Positions 26,227-60,535 of a stretch of DNA of 64,000 nucleotides are shown one piece after another. Each line of letters begins with the position of its first letter. Position 1 is the stretch's first letter. Source of the DNA: Octopus sinensis (taxonomy: Eukaryota); contig NC_043001.1 of the NCBI RefSeq assembly GCF_006345805.1, positions 99,696,001 to 99,760,000 on the forward strand. Reading direction: 5' to 3'. The notes under the pieces are model-generated. The model did no database searches and had not been told where the DNA came from. It saw nothing but the letters and a program-made list of their open reading frames with translations. Both the position numbers and the translations under genes were made by a program.

Positions 26227-26496
26227 TCAAAGTAAGCCAATGGAGATTATAAGAATAAAAATAAGAGTTAGACATGGTGCTCTTGGAGGATTTGCAGTTC
26301 CTGTATAATAGGTACGTGGATAAATCTTTATCTGTACTATGGTGGTTGTAGTCTTTGAGCAAGGTTGTGGGGTATGTATTGGACGTTTTTTACATAACTG
26401 TTCTGATGGAGGCCGAAGCCAAATATGAATTCCATTGATTTGGAAATTTTTATTCAACATACATGCTGGTAAATAATCTTTCTGAAGTCCAGTGAA
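26227..26496 (-). CDS. Terminal coding exon (FTGLQKDYLPACMLNK...IHIWLRPPSEQLC...APCLTLIFILIISIGLL*) with a GPI-signal-like tail
   Basis: Inside ORF 26227-26535. Acceptor ttgtttttgcag|TTC, phase 0 matches the previous exon. 89 codons + TGA. Confidence 0.88.
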   Translation of the reverse strand, partial: FTGLQKDYLPACMLNKNFQINGIHIWLRPPSEQLCKKRPIHTPQPCSKTTTTIVQIKIYPRTYYTGTANPPRAPCLTLIFILIISIGLL

Positions 26497-27425
26497 CTGC
26501 AAAAACAAATAAAAAAACAAATAAATAACAAGCATATATCAATATTTGAAAAATATCTATGCATATCAAACAAAATGATGCCAAAAATGATCTGCCATTC
26601 AAGCCAAAAGGAATGAAGCTGTTCCATTTCTTTTATGATTTTGCCCCTTTTCTTGGTGATTGCAGTGCTCTTATCCCTGGAACAGTATCTTGGATATGAG
26701 CTAAAATCCATTCCTTGTCATGAATAGTTGTAAATACCATTGTCCATTGAGCCATAAACATGAGCTATTACTACCATCTTTTCACCTTTTCATAGTGTTT
26801 GATTAGTGCCATTTTATCATCCAAAGGAACGGTATAACATTGAAGGATCACCAGGATTATATTTAGAGGTAGGGCTTTTTCTGTGGGCATGGTGGATTAA
26901 GAAAAGCACAAATTTATACACAGCAAACATAAATGCATGCTTGAATTTCCTGGTACACACTACAATGCTACCTTACAGTGGATTGCTAGAACTATTGGTC
27001 CTGTTAACCATGTAAATAGTCTAAGCTTTGTAATATGTATATTTAAAAAAAATATTAGCGTTGATCTGCTTTAATCAATAATTTGCTCATATTTTCATAT
27101 GTATTTTATTTGATTTTCCACTCCAATACTGGTTTTTTAAAAAAAAATTTATTCTTTTAAATACGTTTGCTGACACAAACAGAATGTCAGATAAATTGAC
27201 TGAAGTTGAGGTTTATTTTTTTCCATTAATTTCTTTAACAGCAAACAGTGTACATCACCTAGTGTCAGCAAGGTAGAAGGGACACCAGTTCAATGATCTC
27301 AGGTTACTATGTTTACATATCGTAGCCATTTGTGAGACAAGAATTTTGAAAATGAAATTACTCACCCTGCTTCTGAACAGTTACAAGGGTGTATTCATTT
27401 ATCTTGATATGAACGCATGGAATAT

Positions 27426-28345
27426 TCATCATCATCATTATACATTTGTTTTCCATGGGTTGGACAGTTTGACAATAGCTGGCCAGTGGAAGAGCTGTCC
27501 AGGCCCCACTTGTCTGTTTTGGCATGGTTTCTAATGGCATGATGCCCTTCCTAACACCAACTACTTTACAGTGTTTACTGGGTGCATTTTACAGGGCACC
27601 AGCACAGGTGCTTTATATGTGCTACTGGCACAGATGCTTCGTACATGGCACCTGCATGGATGATTTATAAGTGGTACTAGCACAGGGACTTTGTACTTGG
27701 CTCTGAACAAGTGCTTTTCTGCATGACACTGGTACAGGTGCTTTTTATGTGACACTGGCATTGGTGCTTTCATGTGACGCCATCACTTGTGGACCCTCAG
27801 GACAAGGATCACTTGGCTGATAGAGGAATGTGCTTGTATGTTTAGATGGACAAGATTTTACTTAGCTCAATGTGTCTTCCCAAGCACAGCAAAGCTCCAG
27901 AAGCTTTGATACCTTGTCATCTCCTCAGTGAAGCTTAGCATCTGAAGATCCTTTCTCACCACTTCATCCCATTTGTCTATTTTCCTACTTACTAGGACTT
28001 TGCTCCATCAACTCTAAGGCCCTTAGCTTCTAGACCTTGCTTCCACACTTGAAATTTCTGTAACTTTGATAGCAATTCAGTAATAAGAACTAGGTCATCA
28101 GCATAGAGGAGCTCCCAAGGGCAGCTAGTCTTAAATTCTTGTTATGGCCTGGAGGACTATCATAAACAAGAGAGGGCTGAGAACCAATCACTGGTGTACT
28201 CGTACACTAAATTCCTTGCTATACTCATTGCTGACTTCAAGGTGTCCAGCAATCAATAGTCAAGAAGTACTGTAAAGAGAAGCAAATTCCATTTGAGATT
28301 CTCTTTTAGCTGCCTGCAAAATGTCATTGACTTTCATCATAATAT
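27426..28345 (-). mobile_element. RTE LINE 3' fragment with internal deletions
   Basis: Reverse complement of CPWELLYADDL (gagctcctctatgctgatgacc) near 28100-28130; (GAT)n tail at 27426-27438. Confidence 0.85.
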
Positions 28346-28399
28346 CACTCTTGTTTACATACCTCCTAACACCCCACTTCTTTACTGCAGCCTATGGAC

Positions 28400-28960
28400 C
28401 AGACTAGCATGTCTAACTTAAGTGTTCAGGCAGGATGTAACAGCAACTGAAATGGAAGAAGGCACTACACTCTATGATTTTTGGAAGACATAATATTTGT
28501 AAGGCTATTCTTAGTATCAACTCAGCATGGAAGGATGTATCAGAAATGTTTATGAATGCCATTTGGAAGACACTGAGCATCTGATTTGAGGACAATTTCA
28601 AAAGCTTTGACTGTTCAGATGCAAAAAGAGGATAGCCTTGTTGAAAGAAGTAGAAATGGGAGGAAGAAGATTTCAAGGCATTAATTGATGCTGTCATAGA
28701 ACCACTCACAAATGAAGAGTTAATGGAGCTTCAGGAACAGACACAATGAGAAGAGCAGCAACCAGAATGAGAACAAAAACATTTCATCACTAAAATGCAG
28801 CAGGCTTTTATGTATATTAAGAAATTACTAGCCATTTTTGAGGGGTTGGATCCTGATCCTAAGTGCTTGGCTAAAGTTATGGGGGCTCTTCACAACACTT
28901 ATGCTCCTTAGTGGGTTATCCTAAATAATAAGAGTAAAACTATTTAACCATTCTAGACAA
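28400..28960 (+). mobile_element. pogo/Tigger-like transposase C-terminal remnant
   Basis: Pieces translate as TLYDFWKT, AILSINSAWKDVSEMFMNAIWK and EPLTNEELMELQEQ, typical of Tigger C-termini. Confidence 0.7.
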
Positions 28961-29780
28961 GTTCTTGCAGCACATTGAAAGTTGACTGTCTGAATTGGAA
29001 ACATCTGATGGTTAACCTATTCCCTTGACATCAATATCAATGCTGTAATCCATGCTTCTCCTCCAACCTCCTTTTCTGGCCACTCAAGCACATTGAAAGC
29101 AGCAATCAGGTAAATGATTTTCTATATTTTTTATTCTTTGGTTCTTTTATTATTTCTTGACATTCACAATTTTTTATTTGTATTTAAATGTTTAAAATAC
29201 AATATTCTATACCAGCTTGAAGTCTTTCTTTTAATGAATTTCAATGATTTTTTTTATTTGATTTTTATTTTTTCCTGTCATGTCATGTTTGTGAGTTGTC
29301 ATATTTTTGAAGCAAACACCGGCATAAGTTGAGATACACCTGTACGCATTTGTTTAAAATATCAGGTGAAATTTGTTGAGGTAGTCTATCCTTCTTGTTG
29401 CCATCAAGTTAATGTTTCCAAGTAAATTTCCACAAGGCCAGACGTGTTTCCACAGGCTAGAAATGAATGGCATTGCCTGTAGTATGATGATGATGATGAT
29501 GATGCATGCTTGCAATAGGTGCATGATATCAAGACAGGGTATAGACAAACGCATGCACACACACATACACACATCTATATAAACCCATGTATACATAGAC
29601 ACACAATGGGACTCTTTCAGTTTCTTTCCACTAAGTCCATTCAATAGGTTTCGGTCAGTACATAGCTGCATGTGGAAGAAACATGCCCAAGATACCATGT
29701 GGTTGGCTTGAACATGAGACTACATAACTTTACCATACATCAGATACATGCATAAACATACATGCAGGTTTATGTATGTA

Positions 29781-31060
29781 TTAGGTCGTCAAGTATGACA
29801 TTTGTAGAAAAGAAAAAAGTTTGTATTTTATAAATACAAAGAATAGTTTTATTCATCAAAGTATGCACCCATATTATCAATACACTTTTGCCATTTCAGC
29901 GGTAGCTTGTCCAGCCCAGAACTGTAAAAGCCTGGCAATCTAGAGTCAATAAAACCTTGGAAGACCTGTTTTACAGCATCGTTGGGATTAATTTTTTTTC
30001 CTTTCAAAAAGTCATCCAAATTCTGGAAGAAGTAGTCAGTGGGGGCAAGATCAGGTGAGTATGGTGGATGATGGAGAACTTCCAACTCCAACTCCTGTAG
30101 TTTTGCCAATGTCATTTTTGCGATGTGTGGTCTGGCATTGTCTTGGAATAAAATATGAGTGGATCAGTTGACTAATCTAGGCTGTTTTTTTCCTTTGTAA
30201 ATTTCTGCATCATTTGGTCCAGTTGGCTGCAGTATACTCGGCCTTGATTGATGACCCAGGCTTAATGAAATCATAATGGATCACACCTGCTCCAGACCTG
30301 CACCAAACACACACCATCAGCTTCTTTTGATGAATTTTGTTGTGTTTTGGTGGCTTGTCTTTGTCCAACCATTGTGCTGAACATTTACTGTTGTTGTATT
30401 GGATCCATTTCTCATCACGTTACATACAATTTAATTCAAAAGTGATTCATTTTTGTGGTGAGAAGTAGCATAATGCTGGCTTCCAAACGTTGCTGTTTCT
30501 GATTTTCATTGAGTTGATGTGGATCCATTTCTCATCACGTTACATACAATTCGATTCAAAAGTGATTCATTTTTGTGGTGAGAAGTAGCATAATGCTGGC
30601 TTCCAAACGTTGCTGTTTCTGATTTTCATTGAGTTGATGTGGAATCTACATATCCAACTTTTTCACTTTACCAATTTTGAACTAGGTGAGTCAATATTGT
30701 TTGCTTGCTAACACCAAACAACAGCAATAATTCATGGGCACTTTGAGATGGATCTGACTCGACGGTGGCTTTCAGTTTGTCATTATCCACCTTTGTTTCT
30801 GAGCGACTGCATTGCTCATCTGTGAGGTCAAAGTTACCAGAACGAAATTTTGCAAACCAATTTAATACTGTCTGCTGTATAATAAACATTAATATTCCAA
30901 GATGTCTGTGATGCTGTATTTCCAAGAAAGAACTCATATTTCAAAACTGTATGAATTTCCGACTTATCCATCTCTAAACAAAAATAGCAAAAAATGATTT
31001 TTAAATACTTTATAAAGTGCAAAATGAGTTAGAACATGTGTCAGCTTTCTAACAAAAAAT
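29781..31060 (-). mobile_element. Mariner transposon (Hsmar1/SETMAR-like), decayed
   Basis: MDKSEIH...YEF start, WFAKFRSGNFDLTDE, HPPYSPDLAPTDY, LPLKWQKCIDNMGAYFDE*; TA-ttaggtcgtc TIR-like end at 29779-29790. Confidence 0.92.
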
Positions 31061-31294
31061 AAAGATTATCAAAATATAATAATGGCACATCAAAGTTTAC
31101 CATATGCCTTACTACAAATTTTATACTTGATGACCAATATGTATGTATATATGGAGGTAAATGTTATATATCATATATTGTGCAATAACATTGGTTATGA
31201 ATATACTGATGTATACCTAAATAAACTAGTGAAACAGATGTATTATACAAAAGACATATTATTAGTCTGTTTATATTTGTTAGTGTATTTGTAT

Positions 31295-31830
31295 CATCAT
31301 CATTTAGCGTCTGTTGTCCTTGCTGGCATAGGTTGAACGGTTTGACCAGGGCTGGTAAGTTGGAAGGCTGCACCAGATTCCAGACTAATTTGGCACAGTT
31401 TTTACAGCTGGATGCCCTTCCTAATGTCAACCACTCTGAGAGTGTAATCGGTGTTTTTACATGCCAGCAGCCTGGGTGTCATGTTCATGGCACCAGTATC
31501 TGCCATGACTGCGATTTTACTTGGCTTGATGGGTCTTCTTCTCAAGCACGACACAATGCCAAGATATTGGTCATTGTCTCCCAACACTTGAAAGGAGCAT
31601 CAGCCACTTTGCCTCTATGGGGCCCAATGCTTGAAAGGTGCTTTTTACGTTCCACTGGCACAGGTGCCAGTTTTGTGACACCAGCATCAGCCACGACGAT
31701 TTCACTTGGCTTGATTGATTTTTTTCAGGCACAGCATATCGCCAAAGGCCTCAGTTACTAGTCATTGCCTCTGTGAGGCCCAAAGTTTGAAGATCATGCT
31801 TCACCACCCCATCCCATATCTTCCTCTGAG
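31295..31830 (-). mobile_element. RTE LINE 3' fragment
   Basis: Tail consensus in reverse complement plus the ORF end. Confidence 0.8.
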
Positions 31831-32700
31831 TGTGTGTATATATGCATATTTATATGTATTTTTGTATCATCATTTAATGTCCATGTTCCATGCTAGCATG
31901 TGTTGGCTGTTTTGATAAGACTCCGATGTGTCTAAGGACTGTGTATATGTCTGCTGTCAAACTGTTCAATCCATACCAGCATGGGAAATGGATGTTAAAT
32001 GATGATGATGAATATACTAAACCAGGAATCACAATAATAACTAAAGAGAATTTTAAGTTATAAATTCCTAAAGATATGAATAATAATTGGAGTACTGTGA
32101 TCAACTTCCAAAATTGCATCTATTCTACTTAAATTATTTAAAAAAGTTTTTATAAATGAAAATTCTGTACAAAACAAGCCACTTTTCTGTTTTGGAGGAA
32201 TGAAGGTTAAGCTAGGTAATTTCAAAATAAATCATAAATGAATGTTAATGTTTCAAACATCCTCTTGTTTTGATTGAAGATGATACACAAATATTTACTC
32301 TGTAAAGATGATACTCTAGAATTTAGTCTGTCAACAGTGACAAAGGTTTACACAAATTACATTCAACATCAACACCATACTGAACACATTTCTAAAGCAA
32401 CTCCTTCCATTCTAATCAATGGAAAAAGGAATAAAGCATTAGCAGAAAACAATTAGCCAAGACTATTCATTTCCATAAGGAACCAGGATTTAATGATAGC
32501 TGGAAGGAATATGCATGTGAACCATCATCAGTGTTCACATTCAAACACATTAACATTTAAAGAACAAAATTTCTACAGACTGAAATTACCAACTTCACAG
32601 GAAGATACAATTGCTTGGATAAGCTATGTCTAGACACTACCAAAATCTTTGAAAAAAATGGCACAAGTTTCAATTATATGAATACTTTCTGTTGAAAAAA

Positions 32701-32753
<53 letters not shown>

Positions 32754-32833
32754 TAGTCAAATTTCCTCCTTATATTTAATTTTATGTATGTATGTATATA
32801 CATATACACACGGATATGTGTGCATGTGAAAAA

Positions 32834-32864
<31 letters not shown>

Positions 32865-32981
32865 ATATGTAGATAGATACGTACATCTCTGTCTTTACTG
32901 ATTCTTAAAAAAAATCATTGTCTTGCAATCATTATTAATTTAGTATTTTGATATCAGTTTTGATGGAAAGGTTGGACTAAC

Positions 32982-33036
32982 TTACTTGAAGACAAAAATA
33001 TGGTGCCAGACAAGTGATCTAAAATTTTTCACATTA

Positions 33037-33087
<51 letters not shown>

Positions 33088-33178
33088 TTATATATAATAT
33101 ATATATATATTATATATATATCGTAATGTGAAAAATTTTAGATCACTTGTCTGGCACCATATTTTTGTCTTCAAGTAA
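32982..33178. repeat. Perfect 58-bp inverted arms flanking a (TA)n core
   Basis: ttacttgaagacaaaaatatggtgccagacaagtgatctaaaatttttcacattacga and its exact reverse complement. Confidence 0.97.
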
Positions 33179-33545
33179 AATAAATTACTTTGCCACATAC
33201 TGAACTCATTAGAAATAGCAGCTAAAGAAATTTCTTCAGCTATTTCTAATACTTAAAGAAGATCTCTCTCAGATAGTGCTTGCCTAAACCAACTCACAAA
33301 GGTATGGGGGAAAAAACATTAAAAAATCAAGTGCAAAGGTTATTTGAGAACGTACGTTTCTAGATTAGTCAATTCGACATTTCTTTCGTCAGCTCAGAAT
33401 TCCTTGAATCGTATTTGGGAACACTGAAAGTCGGGAGCATACCCTTTCGGCTTCTTATCACCTCTAGAATTCTGCTCGAACTAAAAGTGCTATCAAATTC
33501 GAATATGCAAGCGAAGAATTTCTGCTCTCCCCTTTCCACCAGCGT
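33175..33545 (+). repeat. Unclassified dispersed repeat, diverged relative of the arm and spacer at 1750-2355
   Basis: Collinear with the reverse complement of 1975-2355. Confidence 0.85.
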
Positions 33546-34201
33546 GGGTTAAAATTGACAAACACCATGTATTATATATACTTATGTGCACAAGAATCAA
33601 AAGTTTAATAATATACAGTAACTGATCAGTTCAAGGCAATCAGATGAGATGATGCCATATTCATTAAACAGAAAACAGACTAGAGAGCAAAATGCCACTT
33701 CCAATACACTTCCAAATATATGCTAAAATTAATCATGTCATCTTCATTTAATATGAGGCTGTGAAGTGAGTGTTGTCATAAGATAATGTTTGTGGGAAAC
33801 CAAGTGTGTGAAATAGTTTTGATCCTCAGTTACAAGTGCTTCCTTCATAGTTTTAATTATCTAAGGAAGATATGAATTTTAAAATTTTGCAGTTACTTCT
33901 CATTATGAAACAAACATATTAGGCCTGTATAAAAGTTACTTATTTCAAATATCAGAGAACTCTTGGTAATCCTAGAGAATACTCAGGTATTCTCTTTGGT
34001 GATAAAGGCCCAGCAAAACCATAATCAACCTACTATAATCTCTGAAAGAGTTTTAATTAAAAAAAAATATATTTATATAAAAAAAAAAACATAAATTGAA
34101 AAAGAAAAATATTTATCAAAAATGATGTAAAGCACTTTGAAGATTTTCTGGAAATAGGATTTGTATTTATATAAAAAGTGAGAAAATATTTGTCTACTTA
34201 C

Positions 34202-34377
34202 TGCATACAAATTTGGTGGAAGATAATACCAATTCAGGTCATATTTATTATTTTTTGGTGGCTTCCCTTGAAACATCCACCCAAAGGCACCCAATTTTCC
34301 ATCAGTGTATGTGAGAAATACAGGGTATAGTTCTTCACAGTTTAACTTCTTTGAAAGGTTCATGAAATAATGTGTTC
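34202..34377 (-). CDS. Coding exon (GTHYFMNLSKKLNCEELYPVFLTYTDGKLGAFGWMFQGKPPKNNKYDLNWYYLPPNLYA)
   Basis: Inside ORF 34073-34522. A poly-T tract precedes the acceptor atgcag|GA; donor GCA|gtaagt. 176 nt = 2 + 58 codons; the join gives CVAKM-G-THYF. Confidence 0.92.
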
Positions 34378-34777
34378 CTGCATAAAAAAAAAAAGCACCA
34401 TTTTCAAAACATGTATTCTTGCAAGACTTCAGCTGTACTGGTGAGAAATACAGAATACAGGAGAGGGTAACAGAACCAAATATTTGGTTCAATTCTGAAA
34501 TCTTTGTAATTTCGAGTGACACTAGCCATAGAGAAGATAAGATCCCATGATTTGACTTGTCATTTAAGAGTGAAACACATTTCTCTTATTTGGAATCAAA
34601 TCTGTTGGAATGAAGTTGATGTTAAATTGTCAATGGTTACAGCAACAGATAGGGAAGTTATTAAAATAGCAAAATAGAAGCAGTGTTATTGTGTGTGTGT
34701 GTGTGGTGTGTGTGTGTGTGTGTGAATGCATGGAGGTAGATAACTGCATGTTGTCATTGAGTAACAACAATAGTGAG

Positions 34778-34997
34778 TGTGAGAGGGTGGTGAATAGTTT
34801 GTGGTTTTAAGGGTATCATGAAAGCATGGCTGGAGGCCCAACATTTTAAGTTCTTTCACAGGGTTGAGAAAATCAGAAGGACTGCTGCAATAAGTGTGTG
34901 AATCTGAGAGGGGAATATGTCGAATAAAACCATAATTAACCGGTGCTCCTATATTTTCTTTTAACCAAAGCCAGGAACTTTTTGGCACCGCCATGTA
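34778..34997. mobile_element. Mariner-derived MITE, about 220 bp
   Basis: Right end aaagccaggaactttttggcaccgccatgTA; decayed left end tgagagggtggtgaatagtttgtggtttt; resembles the mariner TIRs at 36225 and 50655. Confidence 0.55.
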
Positions 34998-35157
34998 TGA
35001 TAATCAACCTAAACAGGAATATGAACAGATTTCTTTTGGCAAAACATATTTGTTGGAAAGAACACACCCATTGCTGAAAACAGAAAGCATTCTTTATTAT
35101 AATGTTACTTTTTAAGAAAATCAGTCATAAAAATCATGAAACAGGCTTTGACAGATA

Positions 35158-35204
<47 letters not shown>

Positions 35205-35659
35205 AAGAAGGTTTGTGCATACATACACATAATATATAGGCTAAGAGAACATATACAACACATATCTAGATATTATTGTTGTTATAATAACTGAAAAGCA
35301 GGAATTAAAGCATTACCCCAGAAGTTAATTCCATATCTTCTAAATGGTAATTGCTTGTTAGCCAAGGTTATGAAGGCAGAAAGTGGTGCAAAGAATTGTC
35401 TGTTTATTGAGAATACCATTTTCCCGCCAATGACTGAGTAAAATAGCATAATAAGAATGACTTCATGCCATATATTATACTTCAATAGAAATAATAAGAA
35501 TTTAAAGTAAAAACAAGACAAACACAAATATAAAGCAACAAAGAAATAAAGAATGATATGAGATATGAAAATTGAGCATTTTTATATAAGCAGTAACTAA
35601 AACATCTTTTGGCAGAGTAAAACGAAGTAAAATAGATGTATCATCATTGATGTTGTATA

Positions 35660-35960
35660 TTATCATTGTCGTTTAACGTCCGCTTTCCATGCTGGCATGG
35701 GTTGGACGGTTTGACTGAGGGCTCGCAAGCTAGAAGGCTGCACCAGGCTCCAATCTGATCTGGCAAAGTTTCTACAGCTGGGTGCTAACCACTACAAGAG
35801 TGTAGTGGGTACTTTTTATGCACCACCAGCATGAGGGTCAGTCAGATGGTACTGGTATCAACTATGCTTGAATGGTGCTTTTTACGTGCCACTGGCACGG
35901 GACCAGTCAGCCAGCACTGGCATCGACCATGCTCGAATGGTGCTTTTTATATGCCACGTA
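35660..35960 (-). mobile_element. RTE-type 3' tail
   Basis: Tail consensus in reverse complement. Confidence 0.8.
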
Positions 35961-36224
35961 CATGTTCAACAAAAAATAAAAAGTTATTCCAAATGTGCAG
36001 CGTAGGAAGGAGATCTGATGCTGGAGTGTTAACAATAGTTATGCAGGTAACCGATTAATAATTTAAGTGTGCATATTTTGATAGTTTTTGCATATCAAAT
36101 ATGCAAACATTATCTGTCCGTCTCTCTTGGTGACTTTCAATTTCTTTTTCCTCAACGTGTGTGTGGGTACATATAAGTATTTGGATGTGGGCATATTTAT
36201 TCATAAGTACATACATACAGACAT

Positions 36225-36765
36225 ATGAGTGGGGTCTGAAAAGATCATAGGCTGACTGTGAAGAAGTCATGCTAGAGTTGTGAAATATTGCATGCATTAA
36301 TTTCAACCCTTCTTTTTAACTACTGCAGTGTTTTTTCTCCATGTAAACTGACACCTGACCGTTCAATGATACTTCAAAATTAACTGATAGTGACTTCTCT
36401 TGAAAAATCAACAGATATTAATTGTGACATGGTTACTACATTAACGGATGACACTCCAGCTTTAACAATAGTGAAAAAGTGGTCAGCCGAATTTAGGAGG
36501 GGAGAATTTTGAAGATGACCCAAGGGCTGGATGTTCTGCAACTGCCACCATCGACGAAAACACTGTGTTTGTCACTTGGTGATGGATGACAGGTGACTGA
36601 CTATAAACCAAATAGTCAATGCTATTAGAATTTTGTGTGACAGAGTGGAGAACATTCTTCACAATGAACTTGACATGATGAAGGTTTCTGCTCAGCGGGT
36701 GCCACATCTGACACCTGATCAAAAGCGCACTATGCTGATCACATCATAGCAAAATCTGACGTGTG
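36225..36765 (+). mobile_element. Mariner 5' half (second family)
   Basis: TIR-like gaggggtctgaaaagatcataggctgac; VKKWSAEFRRG...EDDPRAG, NILHNELDMMKVSAQRVPHL (WVPxL-like motif). Confidence 0.8.
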
Positions 36766-36767
36766 GA

Positions 36768-37065
36768 AGCACATGGCCTAGCGGTTAGGGGGTTGCACTC
36801 ACAATTGCAAGATTGATTTTGATTCCCAGATCCTGTGGTGCACTATGTTCTTGAGCAAAAACTTCATTTCACGTTACTCTGCAGTCATTTTGACACTTGA
36901 TGCATGGTACACTAGTGCACCTGTACAGGTAATGCTGATTTGACATAAGGAGTGGGCTAATGTGTAACATAAACTGTTGATCAGTATAAACAAATCACCT
37001 GCATAACTGTTTGGCAAGAAACTGTAGAACCCTCTCCTGTCATCTAACGATAGGAGAGTCCATAA
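36768..37065 (+). mobile_element. tRNA-derived SINE, decayed
   Basis: Head gcacatggcctagcggttagggggttgcactc...ttgattcccaga. Confidence 0.6.
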
Positions 37066-37099
37066 AAATATATATACACATCTATACATATATATATGT

Positions 37100-37530: not shown

Positions 37531-37586
37531 ATATGGGAAAAAAAGTCAAGGTAGAAAATGCTAGGATAATTTTATAAAAAACATTT

Positions 37587-48920: not shown

Positions 48921-49304
48921 AGACACACACACACACACACCACACACACACACACTCACACACAAAACAATAAAGAAGGCAATGTCATTAACAGCTACAT
49001 TAATTCATTCCCTCATTAATTATGTACAGTTTCTGTAACATAGTTAATTAACTGTTGCCCAAACAAGGATTTATCAGCAGCACTATCTTGGGTTCATCTA
49101 AGAGCAACAATTTAATGTTTTTAATTGTATAATATTTGAAGGGTGTTAAATGTAAGAGTTCATCCTTATTTTAGAGTTATATTACAGAAAAATTGTCATA
49201 ATTATTGAAGCCAATGAACACATCCACCACCATTTGCAGTTTTCAACGTTTCACTTGTTTCTCTTTTTCCAAAGTAGTTGAGCTATTTTATTCTGCACAC
49301 CCAC

Positions 49305-49720
49305 TCTTTTTACTCTTTTACTCTTTTACTTGTTTCAGTCATTTGACTGCGGCCATGCTGGAGCACCGCCTTTTGTCAAGCAAATCAACCCTGGGACTTA
49401 TTCTTTGTAAGCCCAGTACTTATTCTATCGGTCTCTTTTGTCAAACCGCTAAGTGACGGGGACGTAAACACACCAGCATTGGTTGTCAAGCAATACTAGG
49501 GGGACAAACACAGACACACAAACATATACACACACATTTATATATATATATATACGACAGGCTTCCTTCAGTTTCCGTCTACCAAATCCACTCACAAGGC
49601 ATTGGTCGGCCCGGGGCTATAGCAGAAGACACTTGCCCAAGGTGCCATGCAGTGGGACACTGAACCCGGAACCATGTGGTTGGTTAGCAAGCTACTTACC
49701 ACACAGCCACTCCTGCGCCT
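49305..49720 (-). mobile_element. SINE family A, full length
   Basis: Reverse complement of 42413-42810. Confidence 0.92.
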
Positions 49721-50304
49721 ATATTGCCCACTCTCAAATATTTGCCCACTCAAATAATGCCCACTCTCAAATATTTTTCCCTAAACCATTCTGTTGCCTT
49801 CTCAATGAGTATGCATTTTTGTTTTTTTTTACATACTTTGTTTATGTTTTTTCAAAGGATTTTACTGTTCTTACATTTTGCTAGTAAGTATGCAAGCTAA
49901 TGACATTTTGTTTTTATTTTACTTCCTTTTGTTGTTGCTAACATCAGAATACAGGTGTGAAGGTGCATTCACTTCCCTTGTATTGGGACTTATTTTATCT
50001 TATTTCTATATTATTGTAGTGATGAATTGTTAGAAGTGCATTGTTACTCAGTCTTTCTTGATGAGTGTGTGGGTGGAATCTGCATCCTATATTGACATAG
50101 CTTCTGTTATTGGTCATAAGGTTCTGTTTTTTTTTGGGTGTCTGGGGGGGGGGAATTTTTACTTCAATATTTTTATCTAGCCATTATGTTTCTAGCAGTT
50201 GTAATTTGTTTGTTTCTTTTCACTGTATTCTCCATTGTGTTCTGCAGTTCTTTCACACAAGCTGCACACTGTCTCTCCTGTGTTGGTTGAGGTGGTGTCC
50301 TTAT

Positions 50305-50523
50305 CCCTTTAGTATTTAAACCGGCCATATCCGGCCAAAATAGTTAACCTGTTTTATGTTCAAACTGACCAGATCCAGGCTCTCACACTTACCCTACAAT
50401 GTTATTCTACATTAAGTAATTACACCATCAAGATCTTGAAGATATGAGATAATGCATGATTAATTCAAATCAATGGGAATCAATAAGCATTATGTTTGAT
50501 AGAATAATCAGAACACTAAAGGG
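50305..50523. mobile_element. piggyBac-type MITE, 219 bp
   Basis: Ends CCCTTTAGT...ACTAAAGGG, flanked on both sides by TTAT. Confidence 0.65.
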
Positions 50524-50654
50524 TTATACTGCCTTTCCACGTACCTCATATGAGAGACAATGTCTCTAATTTTGTAGTTTATTTTCAAGTTTATTGCACA
50601 TACATTGTAGTTGTTGCCAATGCAAGATGTTTTCTTAAATGGGCTTGATATACA

Positions 50655-52065
50655 TATGAAGCTGGGCTGAAAAGTTCATAGGCTGACTATGACGGAATGA
50701 TGTTAAAGCTGTCAAGTTGTGCATGCATTAACTTCAACCTTTCTTGTTAATAGCTGTATTGTTTCTTTTCAGAAACTGACATCTGACTGTTCAAAGACGA
50801 CTTCAAAAGTAACTGGTGGCAATTTTTCTTTATAAAAATCAGCAAAATTTGGCATCATGGTGTTTTCAAGTACTTACAGAAAAACAGTTTAGTGCCCAAA
50901 GGGCTCATGCTGATATGGTTGCTGCATTAGGGAATGATACTCCAGCTTTATCAACAGTGCAAAAGTGGGCTGCTTGAAGATAACCTAATGTCTGGACATC
51001 CTGCAACTGCCACCATCAAGGAAAACATGGTGATGGATGAAAGGTGACTGACTATAAATCATTTAGCCAATGCTATTAGAATTTCATGTGAGAGAATGAA
51101 GAACGTTCTGAAGGCACATGGCTCAGTGGTTAGAGCATTGGGCTCATAATCATGAGGTAGTGAGTTCAATTCCCAAACTGGTCTGTGTGTTGTGCACTTG
51201 AGCAAGACATGTTATTGCACATTGTTCCAGTTCACTCAGGTGTGGAAATGAGTTGCACCATCACTGGTGCCAGACTCTACTTTTGTCTTTCCTTTGGGTA
51301 ACATCAGTTGCCAAGAGAGAAGGGGAGGCTGGTATGCATGGGCAACTGCTGGTCTTCCATAAAAAACAACCTTGCTTAGGTTTACACTTCAGAGGGTAAC
51401 TTTGTAGGTGCAATCCCATGGTCATTCATGACCACAGGGGGTCTTTACTCTTTATCCTTACTCAATGGATGACAGGTGATTGACTATAAATCAAATAGCC
51501 AATGCTATTAGCATTTTGTGTAAGAGAGTGGAGAATATTCAGCACAATGAACTTGATATGATGATGGTTTCTGCTTGGTGAATGCCATGTTTTCTGACTC
51601 GTGGTCAAAAGTGCACCATGCTGATCACATCATGTAATAACTTGACATTGTTTGAGGCCAGTTGGTTTCTTAAATGTTTCCTAACCCAGGATGAGCAGAG
51701 TGATCATCACCTTGAACCAGGGACAAAGAGACAGTCTATGCAATGGAAGCCACCCCTCCTCACCTGCTCCTGACAAAATCAAGGTTGTTTCATCTGCAGG
51801 GAATCGAATGGTTTCAATTTTTTGGAATGCTTATTGAGTATCTTCGAAAGGGCCACACCATCAATGAGAGTACTATACCAACTTACTGAAGTAGTTATGA
51901 AGGGCTTCAAGACCAAATACCCAGGAAAACTAACAAAAGGGGCCTTGTTTCATCAGGACAATGTTCCAGTAGAGAAGTCATTGGTTCCAATGTCTGCTGT
52001 GCATGTTTGTGGCTTTGAACTGGTTGATTTAGCTCCATCTGATTCTCATCTGTTCCCCAACATGG
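50655..52065 (+). mobile_element. Mariner (second family), decayed, interrupted by a SINE
   Basis: TIR-like gctgggctgaaaagttcataggctgac; ALFHQDNVP and DLAPSDSHLFPNM (DD34D region). Confidence 0.85.
51110..51450 (+). mobile_element. tRNA-derived SINE (family D)
   Basis: A-box tggctcagtgg, B-box gagttcaattccc; matches 61138-61476. Confidence 0.88.
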
Positions 52066-52399
52066 AGAAACACCGGAAGGGCTGTGGTGGGCATGTGGGG
52101 TTGGCAAGGTGCAAGTGGCCAGTTGGAAGTGGACAGCATATGAGAGTAGACCTGTTAGATGGTATAGCAGCAGGCAGCATGTGGATGTTGTGAGTGACTC
52201 CTTTCACATAGACAGATGGTATAGTGGCAGATAAAGCACATGGACATTGTGAATTACCCCTTCCAGATAGACAGGCAAGACCACTGTAATTCTCCCTCTG
52301 CTTCTGTCTTTTCCTCCACATCACAAGTTATTTTGGCTTAAAAAAATGTATGCATCCCTTGACCATGTTTGCATGCATGAGGCTGATGATATAAGACTT

Positions 52400-53360
52400 G
52401 GAAGGCAGCTCTTTGAGCAGCATTCCTTGTCTGATAAACTTAAATACATGCCCAAAGAAGTTACACAACTCTACCTCAACATATCATTAGATGAAAGGAC
52501 GAGCATATGTGAGCAGAAAATATCATGCAATTAGTAGAAAGCTCAGATATGATAGTAACTTTGATCACCAAAGCGGTCTATCATGGACTCATAACTGGAT
52601 TACTACCTTCCAGTTTGAAGGGTGTGTTTGCAATCCAGGAACAGGAAATATGCACCAAATACCTGATACACAAAAGGGACAGAAATGCAAGAAATGCAGT
52701 AAAATGTGACAACCAATGCAGACTTGGTGGAGTTAACACTGAAGATATCACCCACATCATAATACTGTAATGACATTTTCAGACAACTGCTTATCTACCA
52801 ATGAGACATGATGTTATAGCTAGGACACTGTATCAGGAAATCCATTGAAAGGATAACCCCAAGGGCAAAGAAATAAGAACCCACTGTATGGTGCAAGCCA
52901 TAGGCACTCATAATAAAAAGGAGCATTGGTGGAATGTTCCAGTGAAAGCCTCAATAAAATGTTAACACAATAGACCTGATATAAGGATTTGGGATAGAGA
53001 AGAGAAAATGTGTACATTTGTGGAAATCAACTGCTCAGCAGAAGTTAGTATAAAGCTAAAGATCAGCAAAAAAAAATATCTATACTGAACTACTGAACAT
53101 GTGCAGGTTTATACCTGTAATTATTGGGGCACTGGAATATGTAACACACTGCCTACATACCAATCTTGAGAGATAAGGCTTCTCAAAACCAGAAAGGAGA
53201 AAGCTGATTTGAAGACTACAGATCCAATCCATCACTGGAACTGTAAAAATCTGTAAAATTTTCCAGAAGTTTATCAAGTATATATGAACATGTCTAGACG
53301 TGAAAGTTTATGCATGAGAAGACATACATAAAACAAAACATACAAATCTGTACGTACACA
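52400..53360 (+). mobile_element. RLE-type non-LTR retrotransposon 3' fragment (R4/Dong- or NeSL-like)
   Basis: Degenerate CCHC knuckle QCRLGGVNTEDITHII, YLPMRHDVIARTLY, HNRPDIRIWD...FVEINC (PD-(D/E)xK), FIPVIIGAL. Confidence 0.85.
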
Positions 53361-55033
53361 TACAAACGTACCTAGCCAAAAATAAACTTCTGTACCTGAC
53401 TTTCATTGAGATGGAGAAAGCCTTTGACAAGTTCTCCTGATCCCTTATCTGGTGATCAATGCAGAAACTAGGGAAAGATGAGTGGTTGGTGAGAGCTGTA
53501 CAAGCCATGTACAGGGATACTGTCAGTAAGGTAAAGGTTAGCAATGAGTATAGTGAAGAATTCCAAGTAGAAGTAGGGGTTCACTAAGGATCAGTCCTCA
53601 GCCCCCATTTATTCATCATAGTCCTCCAGGTAATAACAGAGGAATTCAAGACAGGCTGCCTCTGGGAACACCTCTATGCTGATGACCAGAACTATAGAAG
53701 TTTCAGGTGTGGAAGTAAGGTCTAGAATTGAAGGGCCTTAGAGTCAATCTAGCAAAAGCCAAAGTCTTAACATGTAGGAAGGCAGACAAATCACAAATCC
53801 CTTCAAGTAGATGGCCCTGCTTGAGCTGTAGAAAAGGCATAGGTAGAAACTCCATAAAATGTACCCAGTGTAAGCTATGGACACATAAGAGGTGCAGCAA
53901 TATGAAAGGAAGGTTAACTGGGGAGATAGTTTTTGTGTGGCAAATGCACAGGTGCAATAAGCACCAAAGATGTACAGAAAACAGATTCCATCACATGCCA
54001 GGGGGAAAAACTAGAAGTAGTTGATAACTTCTGTTATCTAGGTGACCAAGTCAGTAGCAGGGATGGATGGTTTGTGAGCATGGCTGCTAGAATAAGAATA
54101 GCCTGGGCAAAGTTCAGAGAGCTCCTACTTCTGCTGGTAACAAAGAGCCTCTCACTCAGTGTGAAAGGTAGATGTATGTGTGTGAACAGACATTGCACGG
54201 CAGTGAAACATGGGCTGTGACTGCTGAGGACTTGTGTAGGCTTGAAAGAAATTAAGCTAGAATGCTCTGCAGGATGTGTAATGTCAGTGTGCATACATGA
54301 CAGAGTGTAAGTGCCCTGAGAGAAAGGTTGGACATAAGAAGCATTAGATGTGGTGTGCAAGAGAGATGGCTGCAATGATCATCTGGTGTGTATGGATAAG
54401 GACAGCAGTATGAAGAACTATCACACCCTAACAGTGGAAGGAACCTGTGGAAGAGGTGGACCCAGGAAGAGATGGGGTGAGATGGTGAAGCATGACCTTT
54501 GAACGTTGGGCCTCACAGTGGCAATGACAAGTGACTGAGACCTTTGAAGATATGCTGTGCTTGAGAAGACCCAGCAAACCAAGAGAGATCGTATCTGTGG
54601 CCTATATCAGTGTCATATAACTGGCCTGTTTAAAAGTATCCTTAAATCATTGGGCAATATGCTGTGATTGAGAAGACCTGTTGAGTCAAGTGAAATTGTT
54701 GTTGTGGCCAATGCCATTGCTGCCTGACTAGCACCCATGCCAGTGGCATGTAAAAAGTATCATTCAAATGTGGACGATGCCAGTGCTGCCTGACTGGCTC
54801 TCATGCTGGTGGCATGTAAAAAGCACCATTCAAGCATGGTCATTGCCAGTGCCACCTGACTGGCCCCAATGCTGGTGGCACATAAAAACCCCACTACACT
54901 CTCAGAGTGGTTGGTGCTAGGAAGGGCAACCAGCTGTTGAAACATTGCCAGAACAGACTGAAGCCTGGTGCAACCTCCTGGCTTGCCAGTCCTTAGTCAA
55001 ACCGTCCAACTCATAAATGATTATGATGATGAT
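53360..55033 (+). mobile_element. RTE LINE, 5'-truncated
   Basis: EMEKAFDK, LYADD, LEVVDNFCYLGDQ, RIAWAKFRELL; (GAT)n tail. Confidence 0.92.
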
Positions 55034-55354
55034 ACATGCAAAAATACCCTGTTGATGCTGAAATTTCAATGAAGAAGTCTTGGATTTTGGTTAGAAACTG
55101 GCTCTTTCTCTACTGGCAAGAAATCTTGAAATAAAACCGAATAATGACATACATATGCACATAATTCACATACACACATAGGCATTTCACACCATGCATC
55201 AAGCTATAAACATCCATAAGTACATGGTATATAGTAATGTAGATGGTTGTAAGGTACAGATTTATTATACAAATGTATCCATACAAGCCCACCCAATCTT
55301 AAAACATAAATTTGATTAATTTTATTAAAGTTATGCCAGAAAGTTTATGCTTAC

Positions 55355-55481
55355 CTGTAAGAGTATATAACTTTACATCTTTCTTAATGGTCTCACCCAC
55401 CATAAATGGAGGCATCGTTTTTGGTGATGGAATGCGTATAGTGTTATTGTTAGAGTCAAAACCTTCCAAACGGCCTTTGAT
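55355..55481 (-). CDS. Coding exon (IKGRLEGFDSNNNTIRIPSPKTMPPFMVGETIKKDVKLYTLT)
   Basis: Inside ORF 55299-55496. Acceptor gaatttcag|ATC, donor ACAG|gtaagc. 127 nt = 42 codons + 1 nt (phase 0 to 1). Confidence 0.88.
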
Positions 55482-56954
55482 CTGAAATTCAGACATATTT
55501 CTAATTTTAACCCAAAGAGTAATCAGAAGGAAAATAATACAGGGAAGACTTGGTAAATAAACGAAAAATATTTTTGCATTTTGATATTTTTTTAATATTT
55601 AGCATGGCAGAAAAGAAAATATTTGACAGGTGTTGGTCTCATATGAGCATGAAGAACATTCTGTCCATTCAGAAATCAATTAAATAACAGTCACAGTGCA
55701 AAATTTACTCTGCATCAGCTTGATTCTAATTTAGCGTGGAATCTCTTATTTGTTGAATAACAGATATATTAATGCATTACATATCCACCTCCAAAAAGAG
55801 AGGAATCTCCTGATTTGAGTTCAAATGAATGTTATTAACTGATCTGAATTATATAGGATTGATTACTCAGAGAATTTCACAAGACACCATAACTTCTTTT
55901 CTGACTTGGAACTTCATTGCATATTGAAACTACATTGACAACTACCACCTCCACTTCAACTAAATAATGACAGTTCTAAACACCACAGTATAGTTCTAGA
56001 TACTACAATACACTCACCAGTAACTCTAGAGGTAGAATCTATGCTCTGTACACAAGACAGCATGCTGATTTCTTCACAAAGACATACAATGAAATGCAAC
56101 ATTTATTACTTTTATAATGAACAGTTGTGCAAGTTGCTGGAAAACAGAGGAAGATGGAAAGAATAGCATAAAATTTCTTTGTTGAGAAAAATTGAAGAAA
56201 GGTTTTATAATGGCACTAACTGCTAATAGTAAGTGGACTGGACAGTTGCCAAAGAAAGCTTTCGACTAACTTTGTTTTGTTCAGATTCTTTTTAACCTCC
56301 TTCAAACATGTGTTCAAGCATGAAGAGCTCCCACACTTTCAAATATCTTCCAGAGTTCTATTTTTGTTTTGAAGAGTCTGAAGGGCTTGTGTGTGTGTGT
56401 GTGTGTGTGTTTGTGCATGCACGCAGGTATGTGTGTGTGTCACAGAGAAGGCATTGACAAAAGATATAATATGTGATTTATACACATGTACAAATAATAG
56501 TGACATTCTCTGAGAATAGTTGCAAGGAAAAAAAAAGACAGAGTAAAATATAGAGTTATAAAACATTTCCCATTGCATGAAATGTGCATGGCAAAAGTCA
56601 GTTATTTATGTTTAATAAATGGTATTAAAAAAAACTATTATGTAACTGGCTATTTTGACCCAAAAGTTGATTTCTTAAATGATAATGATAGTTGTAGAAT
56701 ATTCTTGACACTGTGGAAATTGAAAGTAAAGAAGTATTAAAGTAAATTAGACTGGTTTCAGAACTGCTACAAATAACCAAGTGCATAAGAACAAAACAAT
56801 TTCTTCCGAAACCTAATGTCCTATTTTGTACTGTGTCCGGTCTTTCAAGGAGAAAAAAAAGAGAAATTGCATTGTCTCTACAATAAACTATACAATCTAA
56901 TGAAGAATCAGCTACAAAGACAAAATGAAATTTTCTTTGGGTTAAAAAGTGATT

Positions 56955-58942
56955 TGCTACAAAGGTAAAGGTGACGCACTAGATACAAATAATTACAGAG
57001 GTATCAAGCTGTTGGATCAGGTAATGAAGGTTACGGAGAGGGTCATAGCCCAACTAATTTGAGAGAGAGTTAGTTTAGATGAGATGCAGTTTGGATTCGT
57101 GCCAGGGAAAAGCACCACTGACGCCATATTCCTGGTAAGACAGATGCAGGAGAAATATCTAGCCAAAGATAAGCCCCTGTACCTGGCTTTTGTTGACATG
57201 GAGAAAGCCTTTGACAGGGTCCCCCGATCCCTTATCTGGTGGTCAATGAGGAAACTAGGGATAGATGAATGGTTAGTGAGAGCTGTGCAAGCCATGTACA
57301 GGGACGCAGCTCATAAGGTGAGGGTTGGCAACAAGTACAGTGAAGAATTCCGGGTAGAGGTGGGGTCCACCAAGGTTCAGTCCTCAGCCCCCTCCTATTT
57401 ATCGTAGTCCTCCAGGCAATAACGGAGGAATTCAAGACAGGATGCCCCTGGGAGCTCCTCTATGCTGATGACCTTGCTCTAATTACTGAGTCACTATCAG
57501 AACTGGAGGAGAGGTTTCAGGTGTGGAAGCAAGGATTAGAATCGAAGGGCCTTAGAGTCAACCTAGCTAAAACCAAAGTCCTAATAAGTAGGAAGGTAGA
57601 CAAGTCACAAACGCCTTCAGGTAGATGGCCTTGCTCGATCTGTATACATATATATTTATATATGTATGTGCATATATATATATAGAAAAGGTGTAGGTAG
57701 AAACTCTATAAGATGCACCAAGTGTAAGCTATGGACACATAAGAGGTGCAGCAACGTCAAGGGAAGACTAACTAAGAAGATAGTTTTTGTATGTGGCAGA
57801 TGCTCAGGAGCAATAAGCACTGAAATTGCGCAGAGAGCAACTTCCGCCACATTCAGGGAGAAAAACTAGAAATAGTTGATAGCTTCCGTTACCTAGGTGA
57901 CCAAGTCAGTAGCGGGGGCGGGTATGTTGAAAGTGTAACTGCTAGAGTAAGAATAGCTTGGGCAAAGTTCAGAGAGCTCTTACCTCTGCTGGTGACAAAG
58001 GGCCTCTCGCTCAGAGTAAAAGGCAGACTGTATGATGCATGTGTACGAACAGCCATGCTACATGGCAGTGAAACATGGGCCGTGACTGCTGAGGATATGC
58101 GTAAGCTTGCAAGAAATGAAGCCAGTATGCTCTGATGGATGTGTAATGTCAGTGTTCATACTCGACAGAGTGTAAGTACCTTGAGAGAGAAGATGGACCT
58201 AAGAAGCATCAGTTGCGGTGTGCAAGAGAGACGTTTGCGCTGGTATGGCCATGTGGCGAGAATGAATGAAGATAGTTGTGTGAAAAAGTGCCACACCCTA
58301 GCTGTTGAGGGAACCTGTGGAAGAGGCAGACCCAGGAAAACCTGGGATGAGGTGGTGAAGCACGACCTTCGAACTTTAGGTCTCACCGAGGAAATGACTA
58401 GAGACTGAGGCCTTTGGAAGTATGCTGTGCGCGAGAAGACCTGGCAGGACAAGTGAGACCATAACCCATGGCCTCAGTCCACTTATGCATACCTTTCCTT
58501 CTTGGGACACAAAACTCTACATGTGAAGACCTGTTGAGGCAAGTGTAAATACAAGACCAAAAATCAAAAATCAAAATCGATCAACATGAATGGAAATTGT
58601 AGCTGTGATACCAGTGCCAGTGGCACATAAGAGAACCATCCGAACGTGGCCGTTGCCAGCGCCGCCCTGACTAGCTTCTGTGCCGGTGGCATGTAAAAAG
58701 CACCATCCGATCGTGGCTGATTGTGGCCATTTGCCAACCTCGTCTGGCACTTGTGCCGGTGGCACGTAAAAAGCACCCACTACACTCATGGAGTGGTTGG
58801 CGTTAGGAAGGGCATTCAGCCGTAGAAACATTGCCAGATCAGACTGGGCCTGGTGCAGCCTTCTGGCTTCCCAGACCCCAGTTGCACCGTCCAACCCATG
58901 CCAGCATGGAAAACAGACGCTAAATGATGATGATGATGATGA
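56955..58942 (+). mobile_element. RTE LINE, 5'-truncated, least decayed copy in the window
   Basis: MQFGFVPGKSTTDAIFLVRQMQEKY...FVDMEKAFDRVPR, CPWELLYADDL, RRLRWYGHVARM; few frameshifts; (GAT)n tail. Confidence 0.96.
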
Positions 58943-59354
58943 ATACATCTACACTGAAAGAATTTCATTCATTCTTTCAAAAATTATATAACAGAATAAA
59001 TAAAATCAAACAGAAGTGAATTTTTATTTGATTTTTCTTTAGATAAATAATGAAGGTGAATTGCTGTTGCAGTTAGTACTATTATTTACGCTGGAAACTA
59101 CTTCATTTATGTTCATAAATATCCTTAAATACTAAAGGATATTTGTATAAAGATAATTACAGCAGCATTCATTGTATATGAAACTATGTCAAAGTAGAAT
59201 TGAGCTTATCCAAAATAATTTCGCATCTAAATACTTCGTTTTTGGTATCTGATAAAACATAATAATTAAATTTCACTAATAAAGATTATTTTGATAATCA
59301 TTTGCATTTATAGATTATTATCTTTAATTTTTTTATAATAATGTTTGAAAAATA

Positions 59355-60000
59355 ATTGTTTCAAATTTAAGCACAAAACCAGCAATTTTAGTGGGATGGG
59401 GTTAGTCAATTATGTTGATCTCAGAATTTGACTGGTACTTCATTTTATTGACCCCACAAAAGGGTGACAGGCAAATGTAGCCCATGAGTGATTTGAACTC
59501 AGAGTGAAAAGAGTTAGTATATGTGCTAATGATTTTACCAACTCAACATCTTAAATATTACTTTCTACTGTAGGCACAAGGCCTGAAATTTGTGGGGAGG
59601 GGCCAGTTGATTAAATCAACCCCAGTACAAAACTAGCTCTTAATTTATCAACCCCGAAAGGATGAAAGGCAAAGTCAACCTCGGTGGAATTTGAATTCAG
59701 AATGTAAAGACAGACGAAATACCCCGAAGCATTTCTCCCAGTGTGCTAACGTTTCTTATTTCTTGATTGCCCACAAGAGGCTAAACATAGAGGGGACAAA
59801 CAAGGACAGACAAAGGGATAAAGTCGATTAGATCGACCCCAGTGTGTAACTGGTACTTAATTTATCAACCCTGAAATGATGAAAGGCAAAGTCAACCTCG
59901 GCAGAATTTGAACTCACAACGTAACGGCAAACGAAATACCGCTAAGCATTTCACCCAGTGTGCTAATGTTTCTGCCAGCTCATCACCATTCAACATCTTA
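59355..60000 (+). mobile_element. Three head-to-tail copies of the SINE-like gaaaggcaaagtcaacctcgg family
   Basis: Repeated blocks at about 59355, 59563 and 59760. Confidence 0.85.
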
Positions 60001-60437
60001 AATATTGCATATAGCAAGTGATAGTGACTCAGCTGCTCAGAATTACCGTCTGCACAAAATTAACAGCCAAGCTAGGATTAATACACAAACTATAGAAAGG
60101 AAAAAAAAATCTTATAAAATAATAATATTCATGTTGCCAGGAGAAATGTTGATATAGGGATTCAGTGATTATTAATCTGACAAACATAAGAAAGGGTACT
60201 GAAATTGATATAAGGTTTTCTTCTCTTAACTGCATAAGCATTTTTGTTAAGGATTTTCTTTCCCTTAATAAGATAGCATTCTCTTAACTATGGACAACAT
60301 ATATGGACACAACTGGTCAAGGTTAACTGAAAAGAGAATACCACATCTAATTAAAAATATGAGGTAAGTAAACATGAGAATAAGATTTCCATGGTCTTCC
60401 TTGATAAAGATTGAATACAATGAAATCTTGTACTTAC

Positions 60438-60535
60438 TGCTGACTGAAGTCCTACAATCAAACCATTGTTGTCATATATAGGCTGTGAGAGAAGGTCATT
60501 GGGTCGCCGCCAAAGAAAACCATGATAATATTTTG
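60438..60535 (-). CDS. First visible coding exon of an uncharacterised multi-exon gene (xKYYHGFLWRRPNDLLSQPIYDNNGLIVGLQSA)
   Basis: Not in the ORF track. Acceptor ttttctttgcag|CA, donor GCA|gtaagt. 98 nt = 2 + 32 codons, no stops. Phase 0 end matches the next exon. Confidence 0.85.

Follow-up and report, generated by a model that had tools for sequence, protein, structure and literature searches.

Five exons of an intact octopus gene for a two-repeat extracellular protein, probably GPI-anchored in molluscs

Results

Five coding exons on the minus strand

The subject of this work is a gene in a 64,000-nucleotide stretch of the Octopus sinensis genome (RefSeq assembly GCF_006345805.1, contig NC_043001.1, forward-strand positions 99,696,001 to 99,760,000), the whole of which is referred to here as the window and in whose own numbering all positions are given. 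Five exons on its minus strand, strung out over 34 kb of repeats, are the last five coding exons of the O. sinensis ortholog of O. bimaculoides LOC106868193, an intact protein-coding gene (Table 1). They had been proposed from the letters alone in an original prediction. Enumeration from its exon 60438-60535 and its four intron lengths, under the requirements that the introns be GT..AG, that the exons sum to 845 nt, and that the frame stay open, gave that structure as the only solution. Read from its third base (frame offset 2), the spliced sequence encodes 280 amino acids and then TGA, with no internal stop. Every donor (4 of 4) reads GTAAG, and every acceptor (5 of 5) combines a pyrimidine tract with CAG; exon 60438-60535, for example, is flanked by the acceptor ttctttgcag and the donor gtaagt, and its edges are also where tblastn matches to orthologs and blastn matches to a cephalopod transcript end. 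The exons start in phases 1, 0, 1, 1, and 0, and therefore the first of them takes one base from an exon further upstream. Two near-invariant motifs of the protein family, T-A|Y-F at the exon 2/3 junction and M-G|x-H-Y at the exon 3/4 junction, are created only by splicing. As had been predicted, a mechanical list of open reading frames (ORFs) holds no more than fragments of exons 2 to 5, and exon 60438-60535 is absent from it.

Orthologs and transcript

The 280-residue product matches O. bimaculoides XP_014768843.1 (P0001; “uncharacterized protein LOC106868193”, 325 aa) with E=3.9e-187, 270 of 280 residues being identical (96%) in an alignment without gaps over the full length. P0002 of Argonauta hians is 79% identical to the product, P0003, a cephalopod protein known from a transcript, is 73% identical, and proteins of gastropods and bivalves are 43-50% identical (E ~1e-60 for other molluscs). 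The source of P0003 is L001, a 1245-nt contig without introns assembled from the sequencing run SRR7548197. The spliced coding sequence aligns to this contig as a single segment of 843 nt (76% identity) that spans all four junctions, and the matches of the contig to the genomic sequence end at the exon edges (60535-60439, 40713-40534, 34378-34203, and 26497-26208). The window copy has neither a frameshift nor a stop, and every conserved residue encoded there is intact. Given the 96% gapless match to an ortholog and the colinear cephalopod transcript, this is therefore a genuine gene and not a transposon. It is also an already known gene, as the ortholog of an annotated locus; the description of it as “hidden” does not hold, since RefSeq-type models exist for both O. 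bimaculoides and A. hians.

When eleven family members were run against the window by tblastn, matches fell at these five exons only, with no paralog, pseudo-exon, or upstream exon found in the window; tandem paralogs, which the original prediction had suggested looking for, were thus absent from it. Weak “HHGFL” matches at ~16.3 kb and ~22.9 kb adjoin LINE-like (long interspersed nuclear element) retroelement ORFs and were taken as parts of those elements or as chance. A transposon-encoded protein was considered and rejected: the spliced product has no Pfam hit, and the RVT_1 match and sub-threshold DDE_3/HTH_Tnp matches are confined to intronic ORFs.

The upstream end of the gene lies elsewhere. 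Neither the ~45-70 N-terminal residues of the orthologs nor nucleotides 1-298 of L001 have a counterpart in the 3.5 kb upstream of 60535 or anywhere else in the window; therefore the 5′ exons are beyond it, where the signal-peptide exon or exons had been expected. The missing part comprises the signal peptide and ~45 conserved residues, including Cys43. In P0002 and P0003 it takes the form of a typical signal peptide followed by the conserved segment W..[IL]S.RYG.W...P.T...A...GY.R.N..C. The O. bimaculoides model P0001 begins MANIIQNWYKEHKSDV, with no signal peptide, while the Argonauta protein and P0003 begin MDLL, continue through the signal peptide, and reach W.NISMRYGKWY; the O. bimaculoides model has probably been given a wrong first exon.

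Table 1. Features of the gene and its introns in the window (residue numbers are those of P0001 unless marked as window residues)
Feature	Position	Strand	Size and phase	Encoded sequence and content
Exon 1 in the window	60438-60535	-	98 nt, enters in phase 1	(T)KYYHGFLWRRPNDLLSQPIYDNNGLIVGLQSA; conserved Gly50, Gln75
Intron 1	55482-60437	-	4956 bp	LINE-like reverse-transcriptase copy on + strand (~57.1-58.4 kb), SINE-like (short interspersed nuclear element) repeats
Exon 2	55355-55481	-	127 nt, phase 0	IKGRLEGFDSNNNTIRIPSPKTMPPFMVGETIKKDVKLYTLT(A); N-glycosylation sequon NNT
Intron 2	40711-55354	-	14644 bp	Two further copies of the same LINE family (~44.2-45.3 and ~53.4-54.6 kb), SINE-like families, microsatellites
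Exon 3	40537-40710	-	174 nt	(A)YFKHPRLICNPGAQ...WKKAECVAKM(G); Tyr121, Phe122, Cys129, Trp168, Cys173, Met177
Intron 3	34378-40536	-	6159 bp	30-bp tandem repeat near donor, interspersed repeats
Exon 4	34202-34377	-	176 nt	(G)THYFMNLSKKLNCEELYPVFLTYTDGKLGAFGWMFQGKPPKNNKYDLNWYYLPPNLYA; His180, Cys191, Pro196, sequon NLS
Intron 4	26497-34201	-	7705 bp	Mariner/IS630-like remnants, 120-bp duplication, (AT)n array
Exon 5	26227-26496	-	270 nt including TGA	
Exon 5, domain part	26392-26496	-		FTGLQKDYLPACMLNKNFQINGIHIWLRPPSEQLC; Cys248, His260, Cys271; conserved domain ends here
Ser/Thr/Pro-rich linker (“stalk”)	26275-26391	-		KKRPIHTPQPCSKTTTTIVQIKIYPRTYYTGTANPPRAP; window residues 227-265; AlphaFold pLDDT <50
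C-terminal hydrophobic tail	26230-26274	-		CLTLIFILIISIGLL; window residues 266-280, reaching the last residue
Stop codon	26227-26229	-		TGA

A broad family without a described function

An exhaustive profile search recovered 528 cluster representatives with a cut-off of E<=1e-3, and 248 when this was tightened to E<=1e-10; a second, word-indexed profile search for homologs added almost nothing. Named members come from Mollusca, from Cnidaria (Porites, Dendronephthya, Rhopilema, and Actinostola), from Branchiostoma, from the centipede Strigamia, and from the amoebozoan Stygamoeba (an MMETSP transcriptome). The family had been expected to be one of invertebrates, which fits the molluscs, cnidarians, amphioxus, and centipede and fails to cover the amoebozoan member. 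Vertebrate, insect, and nematode members were not seen among the ~30 representatives whose organism was looked up, no search having been aimed at those groups. No prokaryotic relative was confirmed with the pattern CFxxMGxHYW (from alignment A4) in 185,579 prokaryotic genomes, and an identifier-based search (LOC numbers, protein accessions, and the Sequence Read Archive run) found no literature on the gene or family. The distribution among named members makes the two-repeat domain appear old, present in cnidarians, molluscs, amphioxus, a myriapod, and possibly Amoebozoa.

In alignments A1 to A3 the conserved domain is ~255 residues long and preceded by a signal peptide. Six cysteines are near-invariant (43, 129, 173, 191, 248, and 271 in P0001 numbering), as is a polar and aromatic set made up of Gln75, Thr119-x-Tyr121-Phe122, Trp168, Met177-Gly178-x-His180, and His260. 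The window copy keeps five of the six family cysteines and all the other conserved residues; the sixth, Cys43, belongs to the missing upstream exon. All the motifs from which the original prediction recognized an uncharacterized, Cys-rich “MGxHY” protein are present, and that description is borne out, with homologs called uncharacterized or hypothetical throughout and no Pfam family over the domain. The exceptions are a few names that look spurious or derived from fusions. The label “charged multivesicular body protein 7” on JGI/IMG members P0066 and P0160 looks like a spurious transfer and was dropped as a functional clue; Branchiostoma lanceolatum P0223 is named after ribosomal protein mS31, in what looks like annotation transfer or a gene-model fusion; and the Utp12, COesterase, and mS31 Pfam hits in long models fall outside the family domain and likewise look like gene-model fusions.

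Closest to the octopus protein are P0001 and P0002, orthologs with the octopus stalk and hydrophobic tail (...LTLIFILIISIGLL). Around them is a pan-molluscan clade of full-length models of 343-467 aa (e.g., P0004 of Haliotis asinina, LOC110462080 of Mizuhopecten, LOC143082289 of Mytilus, and LOC101851793 of Aplysia), which are 43-50% identical to the octopus protein across the whole domain, with the six cysteines common to all. They share the motifs TAYFKHPxLxC, GLYIQxG, CxxxMGxHYF, and YPVFLxYxxxGxLGAFGWxFQG, as well as a Ser/Thr/Pro stalk and a hydrophobic C terminus. Cephalopods differ from other molluscs in a “TY-TDGKL” loop that is one residue shorter, in a shorter stalk, and in an “INGIHIWL” variant. 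Hence what had been taken for a possible cephalopod-specific member is the cephalopod branch of this clade, with distant relatives of ~280 aa further out. Oyster P0049 and P0186 and Pinctada P0093 are long bivalve paralogs (585-646 aa) that carry, N-terminal to the family domain, a Pro/Gln-rich region and a second conserved segment (...YPNVPPLRR...LPYP.L.V...YPVY[IL]PFQP).

The distant relatives are soluble homologs of ~260-300 aa from Porites, Dendronephthya, Rhopilema, Branchiostoma, Strigamia, Stygamoeba, and many unnamed marine transcripts. At 22-31% identity they cover the two-repeat domain from end to end and keep the six cysteines, Gln75, TxYF, MGxHY(W), and the final xHxY...C. Most have a hydrophobic, signal-like segment at the N terminus and end just after the last cysteine, with no stalk or anchor. 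Most non-mollusc members carry an additional “RWEHP” motif, which molluscs lack. A few of the soluble homologs are fused to a Pro-rich N-terminal region or to a PAN/Apple domain, the latter borderline (in one member PAN_4 scores 26.4 bits against a cut-off of 27).

Fold and internal duplication

Pfam gave no hit for the spliced product and none over the family domain in 25 mollusc and 20 distant members, where only sub-threshold chance matches, the borderline PAN, and hits in fused regions appeared. Against the PDB, phmmer and two family profiles returned nothing below E=0.46; a resemblance to the antibody light-chain motif LLIYDVN..PSGV seen in the PDB search (E=0.5) is weak and was taken as chance. 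AlphaFold models improved with the depth of the alignment, from a predicted local distance difference test score (pLDDT) of 72.7 with 25 sequences to 84.9 with 110 (predicted template modeling score 0.77; five models at 83.6-84.9). Most of the core, residues 21-275, scores above 90 and the stalk below 50, and the structure modeled is rich in beta strands, with a few short helices. Foldseek was run with two models against the PDB and one against the viral database BFVD. Neither of the two had a PDB neighbor (for the model with a pLDDT of 84.9, best E=0.32 and template modeling score at most 0.16), and there was none in BFVD (best E=0.2).

The two halves of the domain resemble each other. The first contains F.G.RY...LIFD.NG.IAGIQ, which is similar to MG.HY...FLLYN.G.LNAFGW in the second, and when profiles of the N-terminal and C-terminal halves (P0001 residues 20-135 and 136-275) were compared by hhalign, they aligned with a probability of 89%, E=2.3e-6, and a score of 36.2. 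Controls scored far lower: 40 column-shuffled profiles had a mean of 10.6 (standard deviation 2.3, maximum 18.5), and the reversed profile gave 9.7. The domain of ~255 aa therefore goes back to an ancient event in which a module of ~110-140 aa was duplicated in tandem within the protein. Each module consists of a short helix and then beta-hairpins, closing with a strand pair of the form [FL]-[IL]-[FY]-[DN]-x-x-G-x-[LI]-x-[GA]. The intron positions of the two repeats, compared by eye, are ~5 residues out of register and support the duplication neither way.

Introns and surrounding sequence

The repeat families found in the window have zero overlap with the five exons. The LINE-like element of introns 1 and 2 is present as three diverged copies (70-85% identity) at 44197-45256, 53378-54571, and 57165-58441, all on the + strand and thus antisense to the gene, one of which has an RVT_1 match (ORF 57084-57407). 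The minisatellite in intron 3 (40227-40411; 6.2 copies of 30 bp, 94% matches) lies 126 nt into the intron downstream of the donor of exon 40537-40710 and yields an artefactual ORF with the repeat ELCKLVGPST. In intron 4, mariner/IS630-like transposase remnants at 29849-30937 on the minus strand give weak DDE_3, HTH_48, and HTH_Tnp_IS630 hits below Pfam thresholds, and a 120-bp tandem duplication (30400-30643, 98% identity) adjoins them; TA/CA microsatellites are also found within the introns. Positions 1-25000 of the window are occupied by very AT-rich simple-sequence arrays (GC down to 0.13 at 6-8 kb), from which long artefactual “IYIYIY” ORFs arise. Fragments of LINE-like retroelement ORFs break up these arrays at ~15.8-18.4 kb on the minus strand and ~22.5-23.5 kb on the plus strand.

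Long gene models recur in other molluscs. Several in the pan-molluscan clade exceed 150 kb; that of A. hians (GCA_054771915.1) covers 192 kb and that of Mizuhopecten yessoensis (GCA_002113885.2) 162 kb, the encoded proteins being 350-377 aa long. Either introns of great length seem to be the norm for this gene among molluscs, or the Argonauta and scallop models have been extended too far.

Discussion

The explanation that we favor has four parts, namely a real ortholog, an extracellular domain of two repeats, a glycosylphosphatidylinositol (GPI) anchor, and a putative binding site, and as a whole we give it a probability of roughly 0.6. The parts are not equally firm, and they are best considered separately.

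The location of the protein is suggested by its ends. In the mollusc clade the conserved domain continues into a Ser/Thr/Pro stretch of low complexity and a hydrophobic C terminus, which in the window copy read KKRPIHTPQPCSKTTTT...TGTANPPRAP, then CLTLIFILIISIGLL, and then the stop. The last 15 residues have a mean Kyte-Doolittle hydropathy of ~3 or more, are too few for a transmembrane helix, and are followed by no cytoplasmic residues. The tail is conserved in cephalopods (Argonauta and P0003), and comparable hydrophobic tails occur throughout the mollusc clade. About 15 hydrophobic residues at the very end of a protein, with small residues a few positions upstream, form the textbook layout of a GPI-attachment signal, and on inspection the octopus sequence has this layout, with TGTAN supplying the small residues, PPRAP the spacer, and the hydrophobic tail the terminus. 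The protein is probably secretory, N-glycosylated at NNT and NLS, and disulfide-bonded, and in molluscs a GPI anchor and a mucin-like stalk probably display it on the cell surface. It had been predicted to be secreted; the extracellular character stands, and what that prediction did not include is the stalk and the 15-residue tail, with which a probable GPI anchor takes the place of free secretion. As we envisage it, the full protein would start with a signal peptide whose coding sequence lies upstream of the window, as in Argonauta and the transcript-derived cephalopod ortholog, and its six cysteines would probably pair in three disulfides. The GPI anchor would replace the terminal hydrophobic tail and hold the protein on the extracellular side of the plasma membrane, and the Ser/Thr/Pro stalk would keep the domain away from the membrane.

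A protein that is not GPI-anchored, its hydrophobic C terminus being a short transmembrane segment or tail anchor, or one that is simply secreted, strikes us as unlikely for the octopus, where the tail, conserved among cephalopods, ends the protein after ~15 residues with small residues and a Pro-rich spacer before it, even though most distant members are tail-less and soluble and in several bivalves basic residues (e.g., KKYVVQR) come after the tail. The GPI call was made by inspection, and in some bivalve homologs the hydrophobic stretch gives way to a few charged residues, which makes a short type-I anchor possible.

What the anchored domain does is a more speculative matter. The two repeats may pack, at low confidence, into one globular beta-rich body, on which Gln75, Thr119-x-Tyr121-Phe122, Trp168, Met177-Gly178-x-His180, and His260 would form a single asymmetric site. 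Such a putative site could bind an extracellular ligand or a metal or cofactor, in which case the protein would be a surface binding protein or receptor and not a structural component of the matrix. We consider it a doubtful proposition that these His, Met, Trp, Gln, Tyr, and Thr residues make up one ligand or metal/cofactor site. Several observations count against the favored explanation on this point: the conserved aromatics and histidines in strands may be purely structural, the “RWEHP” of non-mollusc members is missing from molluscs, and the long oyster paralogs have other residues in place of Met177 and His180 (P0049 reads “RLGHQY” and P0093 “GQGTHF”). On the side of the gene itself, the transcript support is cross-species, and the 5′ exons and promoter are beyond the window.

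The same residues could be read as those of an ecto-enzyme, a hydrolase or oxidoreductase that would depend on His, and possibly on a metal, and act on an extracellular substrate, His180 and His260 serving in catalysis or as metal ligands. Two histidines, a glutamine, a tyrosine, and a threonine are nearly invariant across phyla at 20-25% overall identity, a pattern more often met with in catalytic or metal sites than in those of lectins, and the R-W-E-H-P motif is kept in most non-mollusc members. However, neither Pfam, PDB sequence profiles, nor Foldseek found similarity to an enzyme family, the EHP motif is lost across the mollusc clade, and the oyster long forms vary at Met177 and His180; an enzyme is in our view unlikely, on a level with the unanchored protein considered above, yet a serious rival to a binding role. 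By way of analogy only, the fungal LPMO-like (lytic polysaccharide monooxygenase-like) copper-binding proteins X325/Bim1, which we take to be GPI-anchored ectodomain-on-a-stalk proteins and so an analog of the octopus layout, share with it the order of signal peptide, disulfide-bonded beta-rich domain, Ser/Thr-rich linker, and GPI signal, and in that light the conserved histidines of the octopus family hint that there may be a metal site. The two resemble each other in neither sequence nor fold, the octopus protein has no N-terminal histidine brace, and no membership is claimed.

The weakest alternative treats the exons as an artefact, whether a frame open by chance, an ORF derived from a transposon, a pseudogene, or fragments of separate genes. 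It can point to the LINE, mariner, and SINE-like debris and simple repeats that make up most of the surrounding 34 kb and to the foreign origin of the transcript examined, and is effectively refuted by the gapless ortholog match, the colinearity with that transcript, the intact frame and conserved residues, a product with no Pfam transposon domain, and exons free of any repeat family found.

For annotation, the value of the favored explanation is routine: a real gene has been rebuilt across 34 kb of repeats, and orthologous models already exist. The wider value is modest and concerns the family, a broad and well-conserved extracellular domain with no Pfam entry, no solved relative, and no PDB neighbor of a confident model. 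Such families are candidates for new folds and for new extracellular biochemistry, and the internal duplication together with the His-containing conserved set provides handles for structural and mutational work. We put forward tentatively, and at rather less than even odds, that the two-repeat “TAYF/MGxHY” domain is an undescribed extracellular fold or family, built by duplication of a helix-plus-beta-hairpin unit, bearing a conserved His/Met/Trp/Gln/Tyr site for a metal, cofactor, or ligand, and GPI-anchored in molluscs. If this is true, molluscs, the octopus among them, would have turned the domain into a GPI-anchored molecule of the cell surface.

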